NCBI GenBank assembly: GCA_000708835.1
Contig: DF237161.1
Location: 79,391-143,390, forward strand
Direction: 5' to 3'
From: Klebsormidium nitens
Taxonomy: Eukaryota; Plantae; Klebsormidiophyceae
Length of the DNA: 64,000 nt
Within the stretch, counting starts at the first letter, position 1. Every line of letters starts with the position of its first letter. The notes beneath the pieces are model-generated. The model did not search any database, had not been told where the DNA came from, and worked only from the letters and a program-made list of their open reading frames with translations. The translations under genes were made by a program, and so were the position numbers. Positions 17,996 to 32,644 of this stretch are shown here, one piece after another.

Positions 17996-20191
17996 CGCCA
18001 CTTCAGGCCCTCCGTGTTGCAGGACTCCGACTGACAGTGCCAGACAGGAGACACTTTGCAGTGTAGGAGGAGGGATCTGAAGACGTCCCGCGCTCCAGCT
18101 AGCCTACTACCTGAATCCAGCTCGCTCGGGCCACGGCACCGTTGTGGCATCTATCTGCTGCGCCTTGAGAAAACCCGAGAAAAGCGAAGGGAGCTTGCAA
18201 TTTGCCGCCAGCAGGTGAGTAGCGCTCCCTCTGTCTCATCCTTCTGCATCTGCTTTTTGGTGTGAGCTGTTTTCAATGCAAGGGGTTCACAGTGAATTGG
18301 TTTCCACATCTTCGTATGCTGGTCTTTTCAAGACAACCCTGCCAACCTTTTACATGATAGATCATGAGTGTCATGATCACCGCACGGAATGCATGCCTGT
18401 TTTCAGTGCACAATTCCAAGTTGATACTGGGCTGCTCGCTAGCTGGTCCCGCATGCATGAGTGCTAGGCAAAAGGTACCGTTATTGGTGCCCTCGGGAGT
18501 TGGGTCCTCTAGCAAGCCCTTCAAGCATGAGGAGTCCTGGAAGGTTGCCGCTGGCCAGTTGTGTCTGGGCAGTCACCATCTGGACCAGAGATTTATGTCC
18601 TTTCCCCATTGAGGCAGTGGTTTAAGTTGGTCGCAATGACCACAAAACGGACGCTGCTTTTTTTACGATCATTTTTTAGTGTTTCAAGTTGAGGAGCACA
18701 GGTGTCACTATCATAAGGTCCAATGCAAGTAGCTGTTTCTCAACCGCTTCGCCTGTGATATAGCTTTCAGTCACAATCTGCCCCTCAAAAATTTGACTGT
18801 GACAGGATTGTTCCCTCGAGCATTTCGTTGATTTCAAAGGCTTGCTTGAAACTGTTTTGGGTCCTGGATCTGCAACGCTCGATTGCCATTGTTCAACTTT
18901 TAAGACACTCCAGAATTGCAGGTGCGTGTCCAAAACGACAACGTGAGATATGGAACGAGACCTGAAAAAGCTCGCACTCCCTGGTTGCTGATGCAAGTGG
19001 GTTCGCGTACTCATTATGGAACATTTCTTGACAAATGTCGGCTCCAAACATTTCAGAAACACCGGTTCTTTACTCCTTGAGATAGCAACATTTGGGTGCA
19101 TTTGAAAGGATGCTGTCTTGATCTGAAAGCGCAAAGCTATGACAAGGTTTCCTGTTTTTCCTTCCCTGCAGAGATATCTGATATCTTTGAAAAAAGTGTA
19201 TTGAGCTGGGGTTTCCTATACCACCAATTGAAGGAGCGGAAAAGGGGGCTCTTATCACCCCCCCCTGACTTGTTGCAACCAAGGTAGAGGTGAGCAGGGA
19301 TGTTAAAGTCAGAGTCGTACTTCGTTAGACTCGTTTTTTTTTGGTTCATGGAAATCGGAAAAGGGAACTGCTACAAATCAAAACCTTGAACAATTTGAAC
19401 AAGGTTTGGCTGGCTTTATGATATGGGTTGTGGTCAGATTGAGTGTTTGTGGCCATGCAGCCGGGGATCTTGCACTACCATCCTCTTGGTCTTCCTCTTG
19501 GTCATTGTCACTCTTGCCTTATGAAGGTTGTGTGGAGTTTACCCTACCATTCTCTTGGTTATTCTTGGTCATCCTTCACTCGCGCTTTGAGAAGGCTCTT
19601 TTGATACTGAAGTTTTGGGGCATCTGTTAAGCGATGGTTGTCCAGATCTCACATGCAGGTGTGAAAGCACCGAAAGATGTCATCAAATCTCTCATCTCAT
19701 GTCAGAAAGCTGAGTGGCCTTTCACATCAAAGCGCAATGAGGGCAAAGTTGGGCATGGGCTCGCAGGCTTAGATATGCTGTTTGCATTGTGACTCTTGAC
19801 TCAACGCGATTTGCATGTTGAGCAAAGTCGACAACAGCTGCATCCAGAACCATTTCACACCATTGCCTCTAGGAAATGATTTTGTATTCATCCAGTTCCT
19901 CTGGACTCTGCAGCCCCTTCCAAATCAACCTCTCCTACCACGAGAATGGATGCACAGCTGGAAAATGTCCTGGACCCACATTAAAAGCACGCTCAAGAAA
20001 GCACAGAAGCCAGTGTTGGCTCCACAAAGCGAGGTTCACACCACAGGTATCTAATCCACGGAGAGCTGCATGTCTGTTGGAACCCCAACAACTGCTTCTC
20101 GGACCTCTTCTTCAGTCCCTCTTTCGCTAAACATGGTACCCCGAGCTTGACCTCTCCATCTTCTACTCTTTGCAGCGGAGCAGCAGCAGCC

Positions 20192-23100
20192 ATGAACGGG
20201 ACCGTCACCATGGAGCTGCTCTCTGAGACCGTGGAGCGTCTCCCGCTGGCGGAGCTGGCGTTCTACCCGGTGGCCTTCATGGTCCTCCTGCTCAGTTGGA
20301 CCACCAGGGCCGCCACGCCCGACCCCGCCGCGGTAAGGCCTGCCTCGCAGTTGCGCTTCCAGCACAGCAAATGAATCATAGCTCCTGCTGATGACAGCTT
20401 GCCACACTCCGACCATGCGCGGTGCGCTTGTCAGTGGAGCAAGTTTTGAAGTCATGAAAATTTTAAAAGGCATTCAGAATAATGTGCTTTCCAGAGATCC
20501 AGAACTGAGGCTTTCCGAATTCTTCTCCCAATATATGCTTTCTGGCTCTTACATTTCCGGCCAAACATTTTGAACACAATACTGGCTTGATCCTGTCTTT
20601 CATATCAGCCCCTGATTGCCCCAACTCATGACCCGGACTGCCTCTACTCAAGAAGGCTCGTAGCATCCAGCCACACTCGACCCTGCTTGAAACCCGCCCT
20701 TCTCTTCATTCTGCAGATGGCGTACAAGCTGGGCCTGCCCTTCCTGGGCCGCCTCGCGCCCAGCCTCAACATGGGCTCGCTCCTCGTCTTTGTCGCCGTC
20801 TACTTTGGATCCTCCATGGGTAACTGGGCGCTCGCTTGGGTGGCGGTGGTCCTGGCGGCCGTCACATGCCCCAAGCCCATTGAAATGGTGCTTCTGAACG
20901 CGATCGTCAAGTCGTCGCTGTTTGGCTCCTCGCGCAAGGTCGAGACATTCATGGTGGACCTTCTGCGCATCGCGCGCGAGCTGGCGGCCAAGCAGGGGCA
21001 GCCCAAGGGTGAGGCGCACGTTACTCACTGTGCTTCAATTAGGGCTACTGTCTGGGCTCTTGCTCTTCGTCAGGGGGATTTGCTTAATGTTCCATAGTCT
21101 GAAGCCTCCTCAAAACCGTCGATTTCAGTTAAGAGGCCCGTAGGCGGACTTGCGAAATTTTTCCTTATCGTTCTGAAAGTTTTCGCTGACACAGGCTTGC
21201 CATTCGGCATTACCCAGTCGAGGGTGCAAAATAGATGCCCTCAATCACGCCAAAGGCACGAAGTAGTTGCAGGCCCACAGGAGCCCTTCTCCATGTCGAG
21301 GCTTCACATTTCGAACGAGCTTCCTCTCTTTGACACGATTTGTCAAACTGACACAAGGTTTGTTCGAACGAAGCTCTTCTCGCGTCCAAACCTGAGATAT
21401 GTTCGGTAACGAGGCTTGGGGGGATGATAGAGACAGTGACAGATTGCTGGCTCCTGACTTTGCCTGTGCGTTTTGGCAGACGCCCTGATAGACTGCCTCA
21501 AGTTCGAGCTGCCCTTCATGCTGCCCATTTACGTCCTCATCGACGTCCACTACGCGCACTTCCTGCACGCAGCACCCACCTGCGAGTTCTTTGCCACCGA
21601 GTAAGTGCCTCTTCCGTTCAACATTAAATTGTAGAAGCAGACTCGGTAAATCCACCCAAAAACCATGATACTTACCTGCGGCTCCTGTTGGGTTTGCACT
21701 CAATACGAACGAACAAAAAATGGCGCGTTTCTCAGATGATGAAAGTTGTGCAGTTAGAATTCGGTTGTCATCCAGGACATCGAAACCTAGCCAAGACTTC
21801 GTTTAGTCAGCCGCTTCTGTATTCCCTGCCGCTCTTCTATCTGTTGTCCCAAGACATTCATTTCTCGGCCCTTTATCTGGTTTCTTTGTTGGCCTTATCC
21901 AGAGTTCTGCGGGGCCCTTCTCAGTCAGATTGAACGTACGTCTTTGTGATCGTCAAACTCACCCTTTCATCAAAATACTCGGTCGAAGTACGAATCCACA
22001 GATTATGACCGTTCCTTCTAAAGTAAAAGGTGCTGGGTCGACCGGAATTATGGGTCAGCAGTACTCCTTTTCCCGGCTGTGAGGCAAACATGCCTACGTC
22101 CTATTGTCTATTTTCACGGTCGTCCCTGTATCTGTCCCAGCTACAAGGCGCGCGACTGGTTCATCGGCCCCAACCTGCTGACGGCCAAGAGCCCGCCCAT
22201 GAAGAACCCCGAGTGGCTGATGCACCGTGCGCTGACGGCCGCCGTGAACGTGGACCGCAACGGCATCGAGTCGACCATGGGGCGCATGGTGGTGCAGGGG
22301 ATGAAGATCCTGGCGGAAATGAGCCGCGATCTTAAGAAGAAGTACGGCTCCGTCATCGACCTCTGCGAAGAGTTCGAGCACATCATCGTGAGTGAACGCT
22401 GGCTAGCCCGCGAATGAAGACGTTCACTCGTGGTGCAGCCCTTTTGAGAGTTTTGTTTGCGGGGTCAGGCAAGGATAGTCGTAGACTTGATTCAAAAGAT
22501 GAGTCAGAATCGAAGGAGAAGGGGTCCGTGGGTGACGAGCTTCGTGGTCGTCCGAAAACAAGTCACGATCAGAGTTTTGTCAATCGAAATCTGCTTCGTA
22601 TATTTGATTCTTTTCATGAAAATTACTCTTTTCCCTTTAATACGTCGTGCTGCCCGTACTCATCTTTAGTACATTGGGAGTGGGTGCTTCGTTGCTGTCA
22701 CTGGATGAGTTTTCGAGAAGTGACGCTTTGCGGTTTCCCATCCCTCACAAGTAACACGTCTCCTCCCCGCAGGTGACGGCCCACCTGAGCGCCATGTTCG
22801 GGCAGGCGTACACGGACAAGTTCCCCATGATCTCCAAGGAGGTCAACTACACGGCCATCAAGTACAGCAGCGTCTCCAACGGCATGCAGATCAAGGTGTG
22901 GCAGCCGCTCGAGGGCCTCAAGTTCCTGGACGGCCGCAAGAAGGTCGTGGACTCCCTCCTCTGGGCGCTCGAGCACAGCGACTCCGCCCTGCTGGAGATC
23001 ATCAGGAAGGCGCACAAGGAGGTGAGGCGAAGGCTGGAGGCCAAAGACTCGTGTAATGGTGCACACAGAGCGTTTGTTTTCGATGGCATCAGCACTCTGG

Positions 23101-26100
23101 GGGTCTTCGTGTTGCATCGTCTTTCTGTGAGGAACGTTGACTCCGAGTTTTCGAGTTGTGATGCTTCACCGTTTTCAGAGTTGTGCGCCCCAAGGCGCTT
23201 CGAAACGTGGACTGGAACTTAGATATATGGACAGGGAAGCACGAATTGTGGGAAGCCTTTCCAACAGAACGCTTCAAGGAAACGAGGATGAAAGAGTCCA
23301 GTTCACTTCCACGCCTTTCCGCTTTTCTTTTAGATGTTCCCGACAGCTTGTCCCCCATACTGGTGACATGATTTCTGCTTCCTTTTCAGGGCAAGATCAC
23401 GCACGAAGAGCTGCTGGGCACGTGCCTGCTGTTCACGTACGCTCTGGCCCCGTCGCGCACGTCCATCTTCGGGCTGTCCCTGCTGGCCAACCTGCCGCAC
23501 GAGCAGGACCGTGTTGCTAAGGAGGTGCGTACCACGCTGCCCGACGTCTTCGACGAGAAGACGGGCGAGTTCGACCCCAAGAAGGTGGACGTCTGGATGA
23601 CCGAGCTCGACGAGTGCGACAACCTCAAGCGGGCCGTCAGGTGAGGACTCAGTTGGGCATCGTTGGAGAAGAGTCTAGCGGACTGATGGGCTACCTCGTG
23701 CGGATTTGATGGGCTTGCGAGCAAATGTTTGAAGCAGAGTCATAGGGTACCCCATCAGATTCGATGTTGCGAAGTCCAGAGAAATCTGAGTGTACAGTTG
23801 GCGTGGGTTTCGCTGTTGTTGTTGGCTGCGTTTCGGACAGAACGAAAGTGATAGCTTGCTTGGTCACGAAGAGGAACTTAGTAGGACCTTCACGGGCGCC
23901 GCTTGGAATTAAGTGCAATCATTCTCGTCTCAACCTCGACGTTACTTTCCTACAGGGAGACGCTGCGGCTGTACCCCGGCGTGCCCATGTTCATTCCCCA
24001 GATGGCGGCGCGCGACGTGCAGATTGGCCCGTGGCAGATCCCCAAGGGCGCGCTCACCATGTCCATGCCCTTCCTCAGCCAGCGCGATGGCAAGGTGCAC
24101 CAGAACCCCGACCAGTGAGTCGACCCACTGGTTTCGAATCTGGTGCAACCCTGACTCTTGTTTGAAAGGTTTCGAGTCTGGAGACTCTGCCGCGATTTGG
24201 GCGCTCCTGGGCTGCAGAGTGCCGAAGCTTGTTTCCTCATGACCGAAAGAAGGTCCACCACGAACTTTTTGACCCTGATGCGATGCGCTACAGATGTACA
24301 CAGAACCGTTTGAGCTCGACATAACGCGAAGTCCGTTGCAGTCCTTGTAGGATCGAGCCGTCTGATAGCTGATTTTTTGATATCCAAGTTGCTCTGTGCT
24401 CGCTTTTGACGATCCCCCCCTTGCCCCCCGCAGATTCGACCCGACCCGCAACCTGGAGAAGGGCGCCCCCCTGCCGGACGGCACGCTGACCTACTTCCCG
24501 TTCGCCATGGGCCCCCGGTCGTGCCAGGGCCAGTTCTACGGGGAGCTGCTGGTGCGCGCCGCCATGGGCATCGCGCTGCGCGACCACGAGTTTGAGGCCA
24601 AGGGCCCGGTGCCGCCCCCGGCCATGCTGGGCTTCATCCACCCCATGACGCCCGCGTGGGCCAAGATCCAGCCCCCCCCGGTGGAGCAGAAGAAGAAGAC
24701 CGAGGTGGGACTACAGTTGACTGGATTCGCCTTCCTCATGTGCCTGGCAGCTGGCAAGGTTTTGTCCGCTTCTGTTAGGTCAACGGGGGGCAGCTACTGT
24801 GAGGATTCTCTTTCTTGTCGGTGCCTCTGCTTGTGTGGGTTGCAAGGTGTCCTTGCCAACGATTTGAAAGACAAGTGCACCTAAATATCTCATGCGCTAA
24901 AACTCTCGCTCATAAGCTTCAAATCACAGCAAGGGAAATTGTCTTGTTTACTACCGATCATGAGATGGACGGCAGGGGAGATCGTCGAAGTGCAGGCGGT
25001 AAAATCAGCTAGCTCTTCCATTGTTTCGGGATTTGCAGCCACCTCCTGTACTGATCATGTTCCTTTTCCCAATACAGGTTGCGAAAGCGGTCCCAGCTGC
25101 GGCGGGCAAGCCGCAGCTGTCGGCAATGAACTCAATCAAGGAGGTGCCCCGCTTGAGCAATGTGGACACCATCACGGTGCTGTACGCATCCACCCAGGGA
25201 ACGTCACGTGCCTTCGCAGACCGCCTGGCGAGGGGGCTCCAGGAGTCGGACCTGAGTGAGCTGGCGGACACCCCCGCCATCAAGGTAAGGGGTACGTGAG
25301 AGTCCACATCGTCGTCCCAAAGCCCGCCCTTTGCTTTGATTTGAACTTTAATATGCACTCTGCACGTGGACATGGTTCCAGGTCGCTTCCCCTATAGTTC
25401 AAACCCTTGATGAAGCTGCACGTTACCTTTGACAGGGTTTTCTGCTCGTTTTCGTTTTCCGTGGTCCAATCCCTGTCGCCCTCGTCCACTCATCACCGTT
25501 CAACGTGGAATTTCAATTTAGCGGTTTCCGGCCGTTCGGTGGAGAACCTCTTCCTTCGTCTTGCCTTGACCTCGTACAGAACTGCTTCTAAACGTGCACC
25601 GAATTCACCTGAAACAGAATCCTCTTTCTTTGTCTTGCCTTGAGCTCGTACAGAGCTGCTGCTATTCAACGTGCGCGGAACCTTACATCAACGAGAGTCC
25701 TCCTTTTGGCCCCCCCCAGGTGTTCGACGCGGCGGACTACTCGATGCAGCAGCTGACGCGCGAGTCGCTGGTCATCTTCGTGACGTCCACGTTCGGGCAC
25801 AACCAGCCGCCGTACTCGGGGTCCAACCTGAAGGCGTTCGTCAACAAGCCCGACACCAAGCTGCCCAACCTGGCGTACGCGGTGCTCGCGCTGGGCAACT
25901 CCGTGTACCCCAGCTTCTGCAGCTTCGGCAAGCTCTTCGACAAGCGCCTCGCGGAGGTCGGCGCGCAGCGACTGATGCCCGTCACCCTCTGCGATGAGGT
26001 GGGGGAGACGACCCTTCTCCGTGGAGATTACTGCAGCATGTCGAACAATCCCAGTTGGGTTAGCAGGAGAAGCTGACTTTATCGTGCAACCGTGAGCACG

Positions 26101-29100
26101 AGTAACGAAATAATGAACGGGATGATCCTTTCTCCTGGTCCGCTTGCATGCAAACCCACGAGCTTCAACAAGGCTTTTTCATCTTCCCTCACTTTTTACT
26201 GCCTCTCGATCCCGGTCGAGTCTACGCAAAAAAATAAGGAGAGGCTGGGACCGTCTATCTGTCTCTCAATGTCGATTGCTGCCTGTTGCAGATTGAGGGG
26301 CAGGAGGGCGCCTTCAACGCTTTCCTCGAGCAGATTGCGGACGTCCTGTACAGCGCACTTGGCGGCGGAGATGGCGCCCCGAGTGAGTCGCGGCTCTCTC
26401 TTAAACACGCTTGGCGCCTCGGATCGACACCCTGTCTTTCCAAAAGCAGCAAACGGTCCTTTTCAAAATCGAAATGAATGTCGCCCAAAGATTTCGAGCA
26501 TTGCTAAGTAGAAGAGCGTCCTCACGTCCCCGCCACTTCATCTGCGATAGCTTGTCTCTTCGAACACAGTACATCCGTAAATAAGCTGAAAGCACATCAA
26601 CTGAACACCGTTCTCGCCCCCGCCACTGACGTCACCCTTCTCCTCCCCCTGAAGCAGGCCCCGTCAGCGTGTTGCCGGTCACCCGGTCCTCCACGGGCAA
26701 GGGCAAGCCGCCGGCGGGTGCCCCCGCGGCCGGCCCGCCGATGGTGAAGAAGCACAAGAGCGCGGACCCCAAGAGGGTGGAGTCCGCGCAGCACCACAAG
26801 CGGTTCGAGCTAGTGGAGCTAGGCCGGGGACAGATCGCGCGCCAGCGCCCGGCGGGGCCCATCAAGGAGGGCGCGCCCAAGGGCACGCGCGACCACCCCG
26901 TGGAGCTGCAGGTGGGGGGGGGCTGGAAGTGTGACGTCAGCCTTAGACTACATTCCATTCTGATGCTTGGAAGCAACTGAGACAGGATTTCTCCCGCGAA
27001 GTAGATTCGGGCTGAAGCAACCGCACAGCCAGCACCGTTATGGTTGAAGCCAAGCAGCTCATACTTGAGAACGTGGTGTCGACCTGTCTGTTCAGTAACA
27101 CACGCCGTCGAGCTCTAAAAATTCAATGGATTACAGGATTTGAGTACGAATTGGCGTCGCGTCAGATGCAAGTCTGTAGGCTAGGCTAAACGCAACAGTC
27201 ACTGAGCAGGGTTTTAACCAAGTAGGAAGTTGGTTTAACTAACCCTTCCGACTTCAGCAGGATTACTTTCTTCCAAAGCAGAGTCCGTGCTCTAATGGCC
27301 GGACTGGCCTTCCGGGCCGCTTCGTGTGTGAACCGTCCTTGCCATCCTTGCAGGTGATCGCCAACCGTTGCCTGCGCCCGTACACCAGCCTGGCGCAGAT
27401 TCGCAACGTCGTCGTGCGGACCCCCTCCGATGGCTCCCTCACGTACCAGCCCGGGGACCTTCTCGGAGTCTACCCTGGTATGTCGGCGGATGGACTCGAT
27501 TCATTCTCGCTTCTTCTTGGGTTCCCTGGAGCAGAGGATGCTTTCTCATGCGATCCCTAAGTAATCGTGGACAAGTGCCAGCCGTGCTGTCACAAGCAAG
27601 CAATACGTTCAAAGTCATTGCCCTGACCTCACTGCGGACTGCAGCTGGTTCTTGACAAAGAGAACGCCCCACGAGAGAGCTGCCCTACCTCTTGCCGAGG
27701 CGTTCGAACCTCCGAAACAGTTGTTCAGCATGAACGATCAGTCGTTTCTCTCCAGACGGAACCAGCGGAAGCTGCGCCGTATTTTGACTGCTTTTCTTGC
27801 GTGCAGTGAACCGGTTGGACCTGGTGACGTCCTTGTCGGAGCGGCTGGGCATCACGGACCTGGACACGGAGTTTGAGCTGCGCCCGCTGCGCGGCAAGGA
27901 CCAGCTGGCGTCACCGCTGCCCGACAAGATGACGTACTGGCTCGCGCTGACGTCATACCTGGCCATCCAGCGCGTGCCGCAGCCGCAGCTACTCAAGGTC
28001 CTGCAGCAGTACACCACCGACCCCGAAGAGGTACGCGCGCGCACTGGCGCCAGCGAGCATGTTGTCATCTATCTGGCGGCTAGAGAGACGGCGTTTCGGA
28101 AATGGTTGCGAACTTGCGGCCTCTGTTGACGTTCTCGACCCGAGTCGGCCTTACCAAACCGTACACAAATGCAAAGGCTGGAGTTTTTGAAATACCGAAG
28201 GACTTCGACAATTTGCCTTGGACCGGCTACCAGATTATTTTCGTCTACTGGGCTCGCTCGACAGCGAGTAGGCGAGCCGCTCGTTGCCTTGTTTGTATCG
28301 GCACCTATCGACGAATAAGCCAGGACGACTTTGCAACTCTGAGACGCCACAAGAGCAAACCACGCTCTGGTGCTGCCGCGGCCCTCGCGTAAAGTGAACC
28401 TTAACGAATGAAAGCGTTCGACCCGCATGTGACCCCCGCTCTACGGCGTGACGTGTGCAGGCGAGCTGGCTGGGCCAGCTGGGCGCGGGCGGCCCCAAGT
28501 ACACCGAATTTGCGATGGGCAGCCACAGTCTGCTGGAGACACTGTACCGCGTGCCATCGTGCAAGCCGGACGTGGCGCACTTGTTCGAGACGCTGCCGCA
28601 CCTGCAGCCGCGCATGTACTCCATCTCGTCCTCGCCGCTCTACCACCGCGGCCAGGCGCACCTCACCATTGCCGAGGTGGGCGCCCACAGCGGGTTCTCG
28701 GCTCCTGCATTTTATTCCTTCGAATGTTTTACTCTGTTCATCAAGTCTGGTTGTCTGTGGGTGATTCGATTTCTGCAGAAATCTGCAGTCGATGACGAGC
28801 GGGGCTGCGCACAGCGGTATCCACAGTGAAAGCAGACTGCATTCCAGCAGAGAATGGCACCAGGGCTGCTCACCGCGGTATCCAGGGTTTCGGTAGAGAC
28901 ACCATTGAAGCAAAGAAGGCCGCGCCAAAATGGCACAGCCCTTACTTTGTTCTCTGTCCCCCTGCCGCAGCTGATCTACCAGTCGCACGACGCCAGCTGG
29001 AAGCGCGGCGTGTGCAGCACGTTCCTGGGCACGGACATCATGATTCCGTCATCCATGGCGGACCCCAACTGCCGCCTGCTGGGCTACGTCATGCCCAACC

Positions 29101-30848
29101 CCGGCTTCCACCTGCCCGAGAGCGCGAGCACGCCCATCGTCATGATCGGCATCGGGTCCGGCATCGCGCCATTCCGCGGATTCTGGCAGCACCGCCTCGC
29201 GATGCTCAAGGTGAGGACGTGTGCACAGCTTTGAGGGAATGCCGGTAATTGAACTCATCTATTGGTTCAAATGTTTGAAGAGCTCCATGAACGGACTGGC
29301 GGACTGGCGCCCAAACCTGTAAATACTTTCTTGCAACGGATTGTCGCAGCCTGTAAAGATCTTTTCATAACCTCGGTAGTTGTTCTTTTAACCTCGTCCT
29401 CGTACAGGTTGCAGGCAGCTTTATGCGGAACGTTCTAGCTGCCTGAAAGTTGGGAAGGTCACGAGCATTTCCCAACATGGCCGAGAGACTGTGAGGCTGA
29501 TTTTTACGCCTTCCCCTTGCAGGACTCCAAGAACACGACCCAGCTGGGCGACGCTCTGCTGTACGCGGGCTTCCAGAGCAAGGTCAACTCGTGCTACCTG
29601 GACGAGCTGGAGCAGGCGCAGAAGGAAGGCGCACTCTCCAAGGTCAGCTCCGCCAGCCTGGATCGCGGCGACTCTCGTCGTTTCTAAACTGGCCTTGCTG
29701 GTCCTGATTAATACCATTGAAAATCGGAAGAGTGCTCCTGTCGTACAGAAACGATGACCCATCCCTCTGAAAGCTAGAAAAGTGTTTTTATCAATACTCA
29801 AACACTTTTTATCAATACTCAAACAAATACCCATGTCACGCATGTGCCTTCCATAGAGACGGAGTGACATCTCTCTCATTGTTCCTTTCAAGCGGCACCA
29901 GCATCTCAACTCTTGTAGACGATCCTGCATTTACGCTCCGTGGGCGCCTTCGCCGGGCCACTTTGGCGTCGGAAGCACCTGGGCATGGGCCTCGAAAGCC
30001 CAGTCCAAAGTCGTCTCAGCTAAACTGCGGCAATCTCAGCTACACCTCAAAGAAGTTCACAATCTGACTCTCTTCTCGGCCTCTTCGTACGCAGGCGCGC
30101 GTGGTGTACAGCCGCGAGGGCGAGCGCAAGTACGTGACGCACGCGCTGACGGAGGACCGCTGGTCGCTGTGGCACGAGTACCTGAGCCAGGGGGCCGTCG
30201 TCTATGTGTGCGGCACCATTAACGCCGCCAACGACGTGCGCGAAACCATCCTGGGAGTCATGAAAGAGGTGAGGCTTCCTGCGCTTACTCGGATTATCTG
30301 ATGTGCTGGTGAGAGCTTCCCAGAAGCGAAAGCCATCGACGATTTCGGAAACAGGAGTCATCTTCAAGAGGCGGGAACCGGTGCGAGGGTCCAATGCCTG
30401 GAATGCGGTTCCCAGCCATCAAGAAACGCATCGATGAAATGCAAGCCTTTGGGACAGGAAAAAGGATTGGGACAACACTTTTTTATTCTTCTCTGTGTGC
30501 ACGCTGCCTCAAGCTCTACTTCAACTGTTTGCAAGAACCACTCGTTACTGCTTGGATCTGTGCGCACTTTTCGAGAGAAAGGGGAACATCTGTTTGTTGC
30601 AACGTCCTCTATTCCCGCATGATGTTTGGAGATTCAACGGCACAGTATGAGCCTCTGATTAGCCTCTCAAGTCTCTCATAGATTCTCCTTGCCCTTGCTC
30701 GCAGGCTGGCGGCATGTCGGAGGAAGATGCTGAGGCGTGGCTGGAGAGCGCTCGCGACCGCGACCAGTACAAGGAGGACGTCTTCGGAGAGAGCACGGCG
30801 TCGTACTCCAAGACGCGGATGCAGGCCCGCCTCCGCTCAGCCAAGTGA
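20192..30848 (+). CDS. Self-sufficient cytochrome P450 - diflavin (FMN/FAD/NADPH) reductase fusion, NOS-type reductase, ~1267 aa
   Basis: 19 phase-consistent exons: 20192-20332, 20717-21008, 21480-21600, 22141-22387, 22773-23021, 23390-23640, 23956-24114, 24434-24704, 25078-25284, 25720-25998, 26292-26382, ~26658-26911 (NAGNAG acceptor), 27354-27477, 27807-28030, 28461-28676, 28971-29210, 29523-29642, 30095-30268, 30705-30848 (sum 3804 nt). P450 motifs: ETLR (ExxR), FDPTR and FAMGPRSCQG heme-Cys. Reductase motifs: LYASTQG, VTSTFG, LGNSVYPSFCSFG, PRMYSISSS, GVCSTFL, GIGSGIAPF, SR..RKYV, VYVCG, EDVFG. Confidence 0.92.
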
Positions 30849-32644
30849 GCTCAAATAAGACCAAACTTGCCAAATCATTGAGACTTCTTGGCCGACGTGG
30901 TCGACCGACTGGCTTCGCCCAATTGGACGGACTCGTCGTGGAATCAGGTGTATTGTCGGGAATCTCTTCTCGCTATGAAAAGATATTGTTGTGATTCCCA
31001 AGGTGCATGCTTGGCCTCGCTCTCGAATCTTTTAGCGGCAGCTTTCTGACTTCGACTTGATGACTCCGCAACAGGGTGAAGCTGCGCTCCTCCTTCCACT
31101 TCCTGGGCGCCAAGGGGATTGCCAAGATCCTGGAGAGCGCCCCGCCAATGTAGACGCACCACCTCGACAAAGAGGTCTGGGGAAGTGCGTCCGTCATTTC
31201 GCGAAGCAAGCTGGTCCTAAGGCATTAGGAGCTTGATAGAAAGTGCTGGCCGTCGCAAGCAGTGGGTTTAGAGCAAAGGTCTAATGGACATATGGATGCG
31301 TCACGAGCATTTTGCAGCCAAAATCAATCCCGGTGGAAGAGGATTGATAGCTCGCTTACGCGCCCCTAGGTAGATGTACTCGGCTCAGTAGTTGCGTAGC
31401 ACAGTCGGTGCCATACTGGTATTTTCCCGTACATCATTGATGTGGCAAACAAGACCAAGTTTTTAACGTGTCCCAAGTAGCCGTTCATCTGGCAGGATTA
31501 GTCATAGCGCCTCTAATTTAGCATATGTTGAACCACATACTCAAGGTTAGATCAACAAGTCGTGCCATTGTGCATAACACCGCTAACCACTGAACCAAGG
31601 ACTCCATATTGGAGACAAAAACTCCGCGTTTGAGTTAAAGGCTTTGTTTATACGAACCGAGTGCACGAAAGGTCAGTGAGTGATGGTGTTGTCGCATCCC
31701 TTCTGTATTGTCATTGAACGAAGTGACTGCAAACCATCGCATCAATTTTGTGAGTTAAGGAGATTAGGGAGCTTCTCGCGTCCTACCGATAGTACGTTAC
31801 CAAGAAATATGTGTTGGTTCACCGATCAAATTGATTTCTCGAGAATCGAATAAACATTTGGAACTCGAGATCGGGCTAAATTATAGTAGTAAAGCCAAAG
31901 CTCGGCTGAACGGCTGCATGGGACTCCGTGATCAATCGGTGCTGCGGACGTGCTTCAGCATGGCGATCTCACCATATGCATGCTTTATCATACGTACCCT
32001 TCACATGTGTGCTTATCTTCATTTACTATCTACTATAGGTACATTCGCTCGAGTTGCCCTGCATAACGCACCTAACTATATCGCGCATATGGCAGTTCTG
32101 CCTTGTCTTTTGGCATATGTCGGTCAGGATTCCCCTAGCTATAAGAATTCTATATCCTCTGTCGGAACACTTATGTGAATGATAATGTTGTGTAGCATGC
32201 ATGTACAATCCAACCCACATGCCACTTTCATGGACGCTTTTCGGATGTTCACGCTGGTCTGTGATCAGCGTGAATTCTGAGAGATCTAACACTCGAGGCG
32301 CACTGCAAGATCGACATGTCATGCTTGTCAGATCAATGATAGATGAACAATGAACGTTGTTGTTGCTGTCAAGCGAAGCTATCCATGCTGGAAAATTTAC
32401 ATGATCAGAATAACAGTGGCATGGGCAGCGCCCTACTTAATAAGAACAAGAGGTTAAGGTGAAGGGTTATGGGACACTTGAAGCACTTCCATCACGCCCT
32501 GGCAAATGAACGGAGGAAGCAAGCTGTCGCATTCGGCAGGCTCATTTCAAACAGGCTCCTCGACGTTTTCTATGACATGTCCGCTAATGCGAATCAGGCC
32601 ACGAGGTGGCAACCGTCATGAACGGAACGTCTCTGCTTCCATCA

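Follow-up and report, generated by a model that had tools for sequence, protein, structure and literature searches.

We analysed a 64,000-nucleotide stretch of the Klebsormidium nitens genome (contig DF237161.1 of assembly GCA_000708835.1, positions 79,391 to 143,390 of the forward strand; hereafter the window), which is intron-rich eukaryotic DNA, and identified on its plus strand a gene of 20 coding exons (window positions 20192–31153) with a product of 1292 amino acids. The gene model combines RNA contigs, a splice-site model and the public annotation. We consider it likely that this is one expressed nuclear gene encoding a membrane-anchored, self-sufficient cytochrome P450 (P450) with a diflavin reductase from a lineage sister to the reductase domains of nitric oxide synthases (NOS). 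The product is predicted to begin with N-terminal hydrophobic segments, to continue with its P450 domain, which belongs to an orphan family, and then a linker rich in Pro and Lys, and to close with a complete diflavin reductase with domains for flavin mononucleotide (FMN), for flavin adenine dinucleotide (FAD) and for NADPH. The product is identical, letter for letter, to the K. nitens entry GAQ84919.1 minus the eight extra N-terminal residues of that entry, which is uncharacterised and carries the public labels “NADP/FAD dependent oxidoreductase” and “NADPH-hemoprotein reductase”.

A single spliced mRNA spanning the P450 and FMN parts was observed directly. Four RNA runs were aligned on positions 20150–26149 (Logan RNA contigs), and single contigs of 4587–4700 nt in runs X4, X5 and X13, which come from three studies, carried the exons from 20174–20331 through 25718–25998, with all eight P450 exons and the FMN exons in the same spliced contigs. 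These contigs run past 25998 into an exon at 26292 and continue for ~2.1–2.2 kb more. Nine joints were found in the RNA contigs, with GT..AG at each. The joint 24702>25076 (cut +2) corresponds to a phase-0 intron of 373 nt (24705–25077) between the P450 half and the reductase half, and this intron was spliced out in contigs from all four runs. One open frame extends from the ATG at 20192 across the joined exons, and the exons are present in ~20 RNA runs from eight studies. An earlier note on this DNA, made from the sequence alone, had read the P450 in frame with the reductase across this intron; the spliced contigs of the three studies bear it out, and a single transcript does cross 24704/25078. 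The downstream exons were modelled using splice signals and conserved motifs, and the resulting model reproduces GAQ84919.1 exactly. The features of the gene are listed below; L133 is an orthologous genomic contig and Phalansterium a source of similar proteins, both described further on.

19258–19289, plus strand: 3′ end of the 5′ untranslated region (5′UTR) exon; contig letters upstream of 20174 map here and end at 19287, and a two-letter ambiguity allows the canonical junction 19289/20176.
20192–20332, plus strand: coding exon 1, with the start codon and first hydrophobic (membrane) segment, residues 1–47; RNA joint 20331>20716 and hydrophobicity scan.
20717–21008, plus strand: coding exon 2, with more hydrophobic segments (residues ~63–105) and the beginning of the P450 domain; RNA joints and hydrophobicity scan.
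21480–21600, plus strand: coding exon 3, N-terminal part of the P450; RNA joints.
22141–22387, plus strand: coding exon 4, P450, with W.MHRA.T conserved with Phalansterium; RNA joints and alignment.
22773–23021, plus strand: coding exon 5, P450; RNA joints.
23390–23640, plus strand: coding exon 6, atypical I-helix FTYALAPSRTS without the acid-alcohol pair; RNA joints and alignment to PDB 7wzl.
23956–24114, plus strand: coding exon 7, K-helix ETLRLYPGVPM; Pfam p450 match and RNA joints.
24434–24704, plus strand: coding exon 8, carrying FDPTR and the heme loop FAMGPRSCQGQFY, where the P450 finishes and the Pro/Lys-rich linker begins; Pfam and RNA joint 24114>24434.
24705–25077, plus strand: intron of phase 0 that separates the P450 half from the reductase half; spliced in four RNA runs, with the same place and phase in ortholog L133.
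25078–25284, plus strand: coding exon 9, linker plus first FMN loop (YASTQGTS); Pfam Flavodoxin_1 1–27 and RNA joints.
25720–25998, plus strand: coding exon 10, FMN-domain core (VTSTFG, YPSFCSFG); Pfam Flavodoxin_1 at 74.8 bits and RNA joints.
26292–26382, plus strand: coding exon 11, last part of the FMN domain (IEGQEGAF); first letters read by RNA contig ends after 25998, identical to GAQ84919.1.
26658–26911, plus strand: coding exon 12, low-complexity hinge and beginning of the connecting/FAD domain; splice-site model equal to the annotation, conserved in L133.
27354–27477, plus strand: coding exon 13, FAD-binding domain; splice-site model, annotation and L133.
27807–28030, plus strand: coding exon 14, connecting domain; Pfam FAD_binding_1, annotation and L133.
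28461–28676, plus strand: coding exon 15, FAD domain with RMYSISSS; Pfam FAD_binding_1, splice-site model and annotation.
28971–29210, plus strand: coding exon 16, where the NADPH domain begins, GSGIAPFRGFWQHR; Pfam NAD_binding_1, splice-site model and annotation.
29523–29642, plus strand: coding exon 17, NADPH domain; splice-site model, annotation and L133.
30095–30268, plus strand: coding exon 18, SREGERKYV and YVCG; splice-site model, annotation and L133.
30705–30844, plus strand: coding exon 19, with EDVFG and the initial stretch of the C-terminal tail, and a stop at 30846–30848 if the next intron is retained; splice-site model and annotation.
30845–31074, plus strand: last intron, not seen in most RNA runs but kept in a few.
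31075–31153, plus strand: coding exon 20, last 26 residues of the tail and stop codon; reproduces the C-terminus of GAQ84919.1, peptide conserved in L133.

In the RNA contigs, the last 30 letters of the 5′UTR end with a TAG in frame, six codons upstream of the ATG at 20192. Because this in-frame stop ends the 5′UTR exon, we assigned that ATG as the start; the extra N-terminal residues of GAQ84919.1 (MLNGAAAA) had no support from these RNA contigs. At the 3′ end, the coding sequence (CDS) ends at 31153 and the protein does not usually finish at the 30846 stop, which revises the gene end at 30848 given previously. The stretch 30852–31072 had a share of 0.00 in the exon-holding runs X8–X11 and of 0.74–1.00 in X25, X1, X2, X26 and X15, and the public model GAQ84919.1 splices 30844 to 31075. 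The peptide of the last exon is conserved in L133, whereas the read-through sequence past 30844 is not. The C-terminus consists of EDVFG followed by a 45-residue tail. Retention of the last intron, as in the RNA contigs of five runs, would shorten the protein by 25 residues with the stop at 30846. Two further contigs depart from the gene model: one in X1 departs from it within the heme exon, at 24618, into 255 letters of unrelated sequence, and a low-depth 253-nt contig in X13 lies within intron 3 (21851–22101). These could represent a minor isoform, unspliced RNA or an assembly chimera.

The domain content was read directly from Pfam matches. Single plus-strand exons matched, in order, p450 (profile positions 329–444), Flavodoxin_1, FAD_binding_1 and NAD_binding_1, and the full protein matched p450 at residues 216–556 (94 bits), Flavodoxin_1 at 619–756, FAD_binding_1 at 887–1068 and NAD_binding_1 at 1108–1219. 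Pfam identified p450 and no NO_synthase domain in this protein; the control NOS P0136 gave PF02898 with 549 bits. In the alignment, the protein has the residues that diflavin reductases use for cofactor binding and catalysis (TQGTS, RxYS, GxGxAPF, SRE..KYV, YVCG and EDVF), in agreement with the earlier description of complete FMN, FAD and NADPH domains with intact catalytic and NADPH motifs. The hydrophobicity scan revealed two to three hydrophobic segments within the first ~105 residues (~16–38 and 63–105), which we predict to serve as a membrane anchor, and a weaker window at ~147–165 inside the region that aligns to the Phalansterium P450 half. A regular-expression scan of the linker (residues 541–625) found none of the calmodulin-type motifs 1-5-8-14, 1-8-14 and 1-5-10, only Pro-containing 1-14 spacings; a motif scan of this kind does not exclude calmodulin binding.

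The P450 signature motifs are intact in the RNA-supported CDS, including the heme loop FAMGPRSCQG, ETLR (ExxR) and the PERF-type FDPTR, all as first reported. The I-helix is atypical: Leu-Ala-Pro-Ser is aligned against the canonical Gly-x-Glu-Thr of PDB 7wzl, and the acid-alcohol pair is missing. The closest solved P450 scored 59 bits over the C-terminal ~40% of the domain only and was followed by CYP51, CYP3A4 and CYP17; no BM3 heme domain was present within the best 60 PDB matches of the P450 half. Its long database relatives comprised three weak matches, the best with 32% identity over 23% of the query, and none of the three is a fusion protein. Look-ups in the ESM Atlas returned only generic flavodoxin or P450 clusters. 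By convention, P450s of the same family share at least 40% identity. Based on these comparisons, the P450 domain appears to lie outside families CYP102 and CYP505 and to represent an orphan family. A bacterial counterpart or a recent transfer was also considered and found unsupported, as a signature scan of bacterial and archaeal genomes gave only free-standing P450s of 456–508 amino acids plus one open frame of 740 amino acids (35–61 bits), which extend ~60–75 residues past the heme loop and lack TY.LAP.

The relationship of the reductase half was addressed with a maximum-likelihood tree of 53 diflavin reductase rows and 567 columns under the LG+C20 posterior mean site frequency model, with the rows aligned to one profile and match columns only. 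The rows for cytochrome P450 reductase (CPR) were 18 complete open reading frames (ORFs) from metagenome contigs, picked via a CPR-specific FMN-loop pattern; all 18 end in W or WS without a tail. CysJ-type and NasC-CysJ proteins formed one side of a branch with support 100* and were taken as the outgroup, and CPR grouped with BM3 and CYP505. The tree places the Klebsormidium reductase (terminal branch 1.05) in a clade with eight animal NOS and Phalansterium, supported at 99 (bootstrap) and 98 (Shimodaira–Hasegawa-like approximate likelihood ratio test, SH-aLRT). After removal of Phalansterium, it still grouped with NOS at a support of 98, and the NOS placement was recovered with the FMN columns alone (97) and with the FAD/NADPH columns alone (87). 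The approximately unbiased (AU) test rejected both a placement with CPR, BM3 and CYP505 (lnL −23.0, p=0.005) and a clade of NOS, CPR and BM3 that excludes the Klebsormidium reductase (lnL −20.6, p=0.011). The view that the reductase belongs to a lineage sister to the NOS reductase domains, and is not nested in animal NOS, is largely supported by these results.

Pairwise scores alone did not settle the question. In phmmer, the bit scores of the reductase were 252 (rat CPR), 237 (rat nNOS), 231 (plant CPR), 184 (CysJ), 181 (cyanobacterial NOS) and 145 (BM3), and the reductase of a mayfly NOS, used as a control, scored 593 bits to nNOS and 236 to CPR. Since the algal reductase reaches only 237 bits to nNOS against 593 for the mayfly enzyme, it falls outside the animal NOS clade; its identity to any NOS is ~30–33%. 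The designation “NOS-type” in the earlier note therefore stands in so far as the reductase groups with NOS over CPR, BM3, CYP505 and CysJ, but it denotes a sister lineage and not NOS proper. In a large-database search, from which a length rule excluded CPRs, the best matches were arthropod NOS (237–257 bits), bacterial nitrate-reductase/CysJ fusions (~200), BM3-like proteins (163) and CYP505 (138). The bacterial fusions (P0172–P0282), the second-best relatives of the reductase, are more than 100 actinobacterial and proteobacterial proteins of ~1400 amino acids that combine a molybdopterin nitrate reductase with a CysJ-type diflavin reductase.

The motifs that had been named as diagnostic of NOS (VTSTFG, YPSFCSFG, DEIEGQEGAF, APFRGFWQHRL and EDVFG plus tail) are all present, and part of this set proved discriminating. 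In our own sequence sets, DE..GQE.AF occurs in nine of ten NOS and APF..FW in all ten, and outside NOS both were seen only in the Klebsormidium protein; YP.FC.F is nearly as specific. Among the aligned C-termini, Phe-Gly followed by a tail of at least 10 residues is found in NOS, in the Klebsormidium protein and apparently in Phalansterium, and in no others. The FAD-lid Phe itself is not unique to the NOS side, as BM3-like and CYP505-like rows end in DVF. Known P450 fusions had been described as carrying CPR-like reductases ending in DVW; BM3 and CYP505 do group with CPR, but the DVW ending is not universal among CPR-like fusions. Of the BM3-like and CYP505-like proteins P0252 and P0283–P0285, three of four end in DVF plus one residue, among them one of each type in the alignment.

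The closest counterparts of the whole protein were identified in the amoebozoan Phalansterium solitarium, in which uncharacterised transcriptome ORFs of 1415 and 1214 amino acids (EukProt EP01116_P015741 and P015743) combine p450, Flavodoxin and FAD_binding domains. The P450 halves share 28% identity (144 bits) as well as TY[A/G]LAP, ETLRLYPGVPM without any difference and, following the heme cysteine, CQGQFY. The Phalansterium protein resembles that of Klebsormidium in architecture, P450 family signature, reductase pairing and an F-G followed by a long C-terminal tail, and differs in its low identity (28–30%), in lacking DE..GQE.AF and APF..FW, and in having no NAD_binding_1 match above the Pfam threshold. 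A profile of P0055 and the 19 exon translations, meant to recover the Klebsormidium protein itself, retrieved P0055 alone. Because the Klebsormidium and Phalansterium proteins are each other's closest kin in both halves, the fusion is most likely older than either lineage, or else it passed between the two as a whole, and would not be a recent Klebsormidium invention. It had been proposed that a P450 replaced the oxygenase domain on a NOS reductase module; we found no evidence for that direction, and Phalansterium instead suggests a fusion family of old date.

The gene was also observed directly to be conserved in a sister genome. An 18-kb genomic contig of a Klebsormidium-like sample (L133, SRR23617307) carries every exon in order at 77–98% amino-acid identity. 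At the DNA level only exons align, with at least 15 of 16 alignable exon blocks 88–95% identical, and the introns are not alignable. L133 retains the phase-0 intron where the P450 and FMN parts meet; its linker has an in-frame indel, and the key motifs are all unchanged. A shorter contig from a more distant relative (L134) holds the FMN and hinge exons at 72–84% identity. This pattern is the one that a gene under purifying selection would show.

Several points weigh against a single gene with a NOS-sister reductase. Exons 12–20 are based on splice signals, public annotation and the ortholog, and not on RNA contig alignment. The global phmmer scores do not separate NOS from CPR, and single reductase exons match CysJ, MTRR or plant CPR best in the PDB. 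TSTFG also occurs in 64 of 107 NasC-CysJ fusions, and the looser YP.FC in many CysJ-type proteins, so these two of the proposed motifs are not diagnostic, in contrast to DE..GQE.AF, APF..FW and the tail after the presumed FAD-stacking Phe. Within the tree, the CPR rows are environmental ORFs without names, chosen by a CPR motif; the Phalansterium branch is very long (2.06) and its pairing with Klebsormidium reaches only 90/80. The NOS rows are animal only, with KnNOS1/2, Ostreococcus and other algal NOS, cyanobacterial syNOS, MTRR and NDOR1 outside the tree, and the sister relation thus rests on incomplete sampling. The exon-by-exon PDB matches had suggested that the NOS assignment was the product of motif-picking, an explanation that the tree overturned.

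The equal bit scores to CPR and NOS, the 236 bits between a true NOS and CPR, which roughly match the distance of the fusion reductase from either, the long end branches and the lack of NOS specificity of TSTFG and YP.FC would all fit an independent deep branch of the CPR/NOS super-group, with the NOS pairing an artefact of long branches or thin sampling and the shared motifs convergent. We regard this as unlikely given the 99/98 support under a site-heterogeneous model, the persistence of the NOS grouping without the long Phalansterium row and in each half of the reductase alone, and the AU test against a NOS, CPR and BM3 clade without the fusion reductase. It is likewise improbable that a reductase half copied recently from KnNOS1 (GAQ81306.1) or KnNOS2 (GAQ90485.1) was placed behind a P450, in which case it would nest in algal NOS. 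K. nitens does have these two NOS genes (PMC8728061), and the NOS-specific motifs and the C-terminal tail are what such a copy would carry. However, no K. nitens NOS appeared among the 120 best reductase matches (at least 138 bits), although the word filter could have missed one; the identity to any NOS is only ~30–33%; and a recent event within Klebsormidium leaves unexplained why Phalansterium shares the P450 family and the reductase clade. That neighbouring P450 and reductase genes were read as one through a gene-model or assembly artefact is hardly credible. As a general caution, a contig that spans two genes need not reflect one transcript, but in spliced contigs of four runs the 373-nt interval has been cut out at GT..AG, leaving an open frame with neither a stop nor a new start, and L133 and the Phalansterium transcript show the same arrangement.

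For the favoured P450 with a NOS-sister reductase, the presence of all diflavin cofactor and catalytic positions leads us to infer the standard path from NADPH through FAD and FMN to heme. NADPH would donate a hydride to FAD, from which single electrons would pass via FMN to the thiolate-ligated heme, within or between subunits, and the heme would act on a substrate that is probably lipophilic. Because the I-helix lacks the acid-alcohol pair, oxygen activation, if any, would proceed by another proton route, or the chemistry would differ from standard hydroxylation; together with a dedicated reductase, this feature points to such an alternative route or to reductive or atypical chemistry. By analogy with NOS, the 45-residue tail might gate electron flow. 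As a tentative extension, Klebsormidium and Phalansterium may be survivors of an old eukaryotic P450-reductase fusion family that shared a direct common ancestor with the NOS reductase, with heme-thiolate domains swapped on a shared reductase chassis; the odd I-helix could then mean non-standard chemistry, possibly on nitrogen oxides or N-hydroxy compounds. This scenario is possible and we hold it with low confidence. A preprint claims the formation of nitric oxide (NO) by a fungal CPR plus a P450 (bioRxiv 10.1101/2020.07.12.191361).

The Klebsormidium protein resembles the class VIII type fusions CYP102A1 (P450 BM3) and fungal CYP505 (P450foxy) in combining an N-terminal P450, a short linker and FMN, FAD and NADPH domains on one polypeptide, with the same presumed electron path. 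It differs from them in a P450 that appears unrelated at the family level, in a reductase that groups with NOS whereas theirs group with CPR, and in its multiple N-terminal hydrophobic segments, I-helix without the acid-alcohol pair and 45-residue tail. Animal NOS reductases form its nearest clade in the tree and share DE..GQE.AF, APF..FW, YP.FC.F and the Phe-Gly lid with a C-terminal tail; in contrast to NOS, the Klebsormidium protein has a p450 domain and no NOS oxygenase domain (PF02898). Domain order and cofactor motifs are the same as in CPR/ATR, the overall similarity is comparable, and the FMN-domain exon aligns end to end (query 2–92 of 93) with CPR FMN domains. CPR, however, is a separate protein with its own anchor and a Trp end without a tail, whereas the Klebsormidium reductase is fused and ends in Phe-Gly plus tail.

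Natural P450-reductase fusions are rare, and bacterial CYP102 and fungal CYP505 have become workhorses of biocatalysis. The protein described here appears to be a naturally occurring fusion of P450 and diflavin reductase that is set apart by another P450 family, a NOS-side reductase, a membrane anchor and a NOS-like tail. If this is correct, it would represent a third independent lineage of diflavin-type P450 fusions beside CYP102 and CYP505, eukaryotic and membrane-bound. The earlier note could name no such architecture in plants or algae; the sequence was already deposited as GAQ84919.1, but our literature search, which lay outside most subscription journals, found no paper on this entry or its architecture, on P450/NOS-reductase fusions or on algal P450-CPR fusions. 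With an outgroup adjoining the NOS reductases, sampling and ancestral comparison could test how the NOS reductase arose and which heme domain was the first on the chassis, questions relevant to the assembly of nitric oxide synthases. NO signalling in the plant lineage is studied with K. nitens as a model (PMC8728061). The fusion would add to this alga a heme enzyme with a NOS-like electron supply, and work on NOS-like activity there should consider it.

We know of no description of tandem-flavodoxin diflavin reductases, a group that also emerged among the rows assembled for this analysis. These proteins (P0001, P0004–P0006, P0009, P0011, P0013, P0018, P0023, P0027 and P0033) form a eukaryotic clade with support 100* and carry two to six tandem flavodoxin domains before one FAD/NADPH module. 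The named members are from thraustochytrids/labyrinthulids (Mucochytrium and Aplanochytrium) and Paulinella, and P0028 adds PDZ domains.

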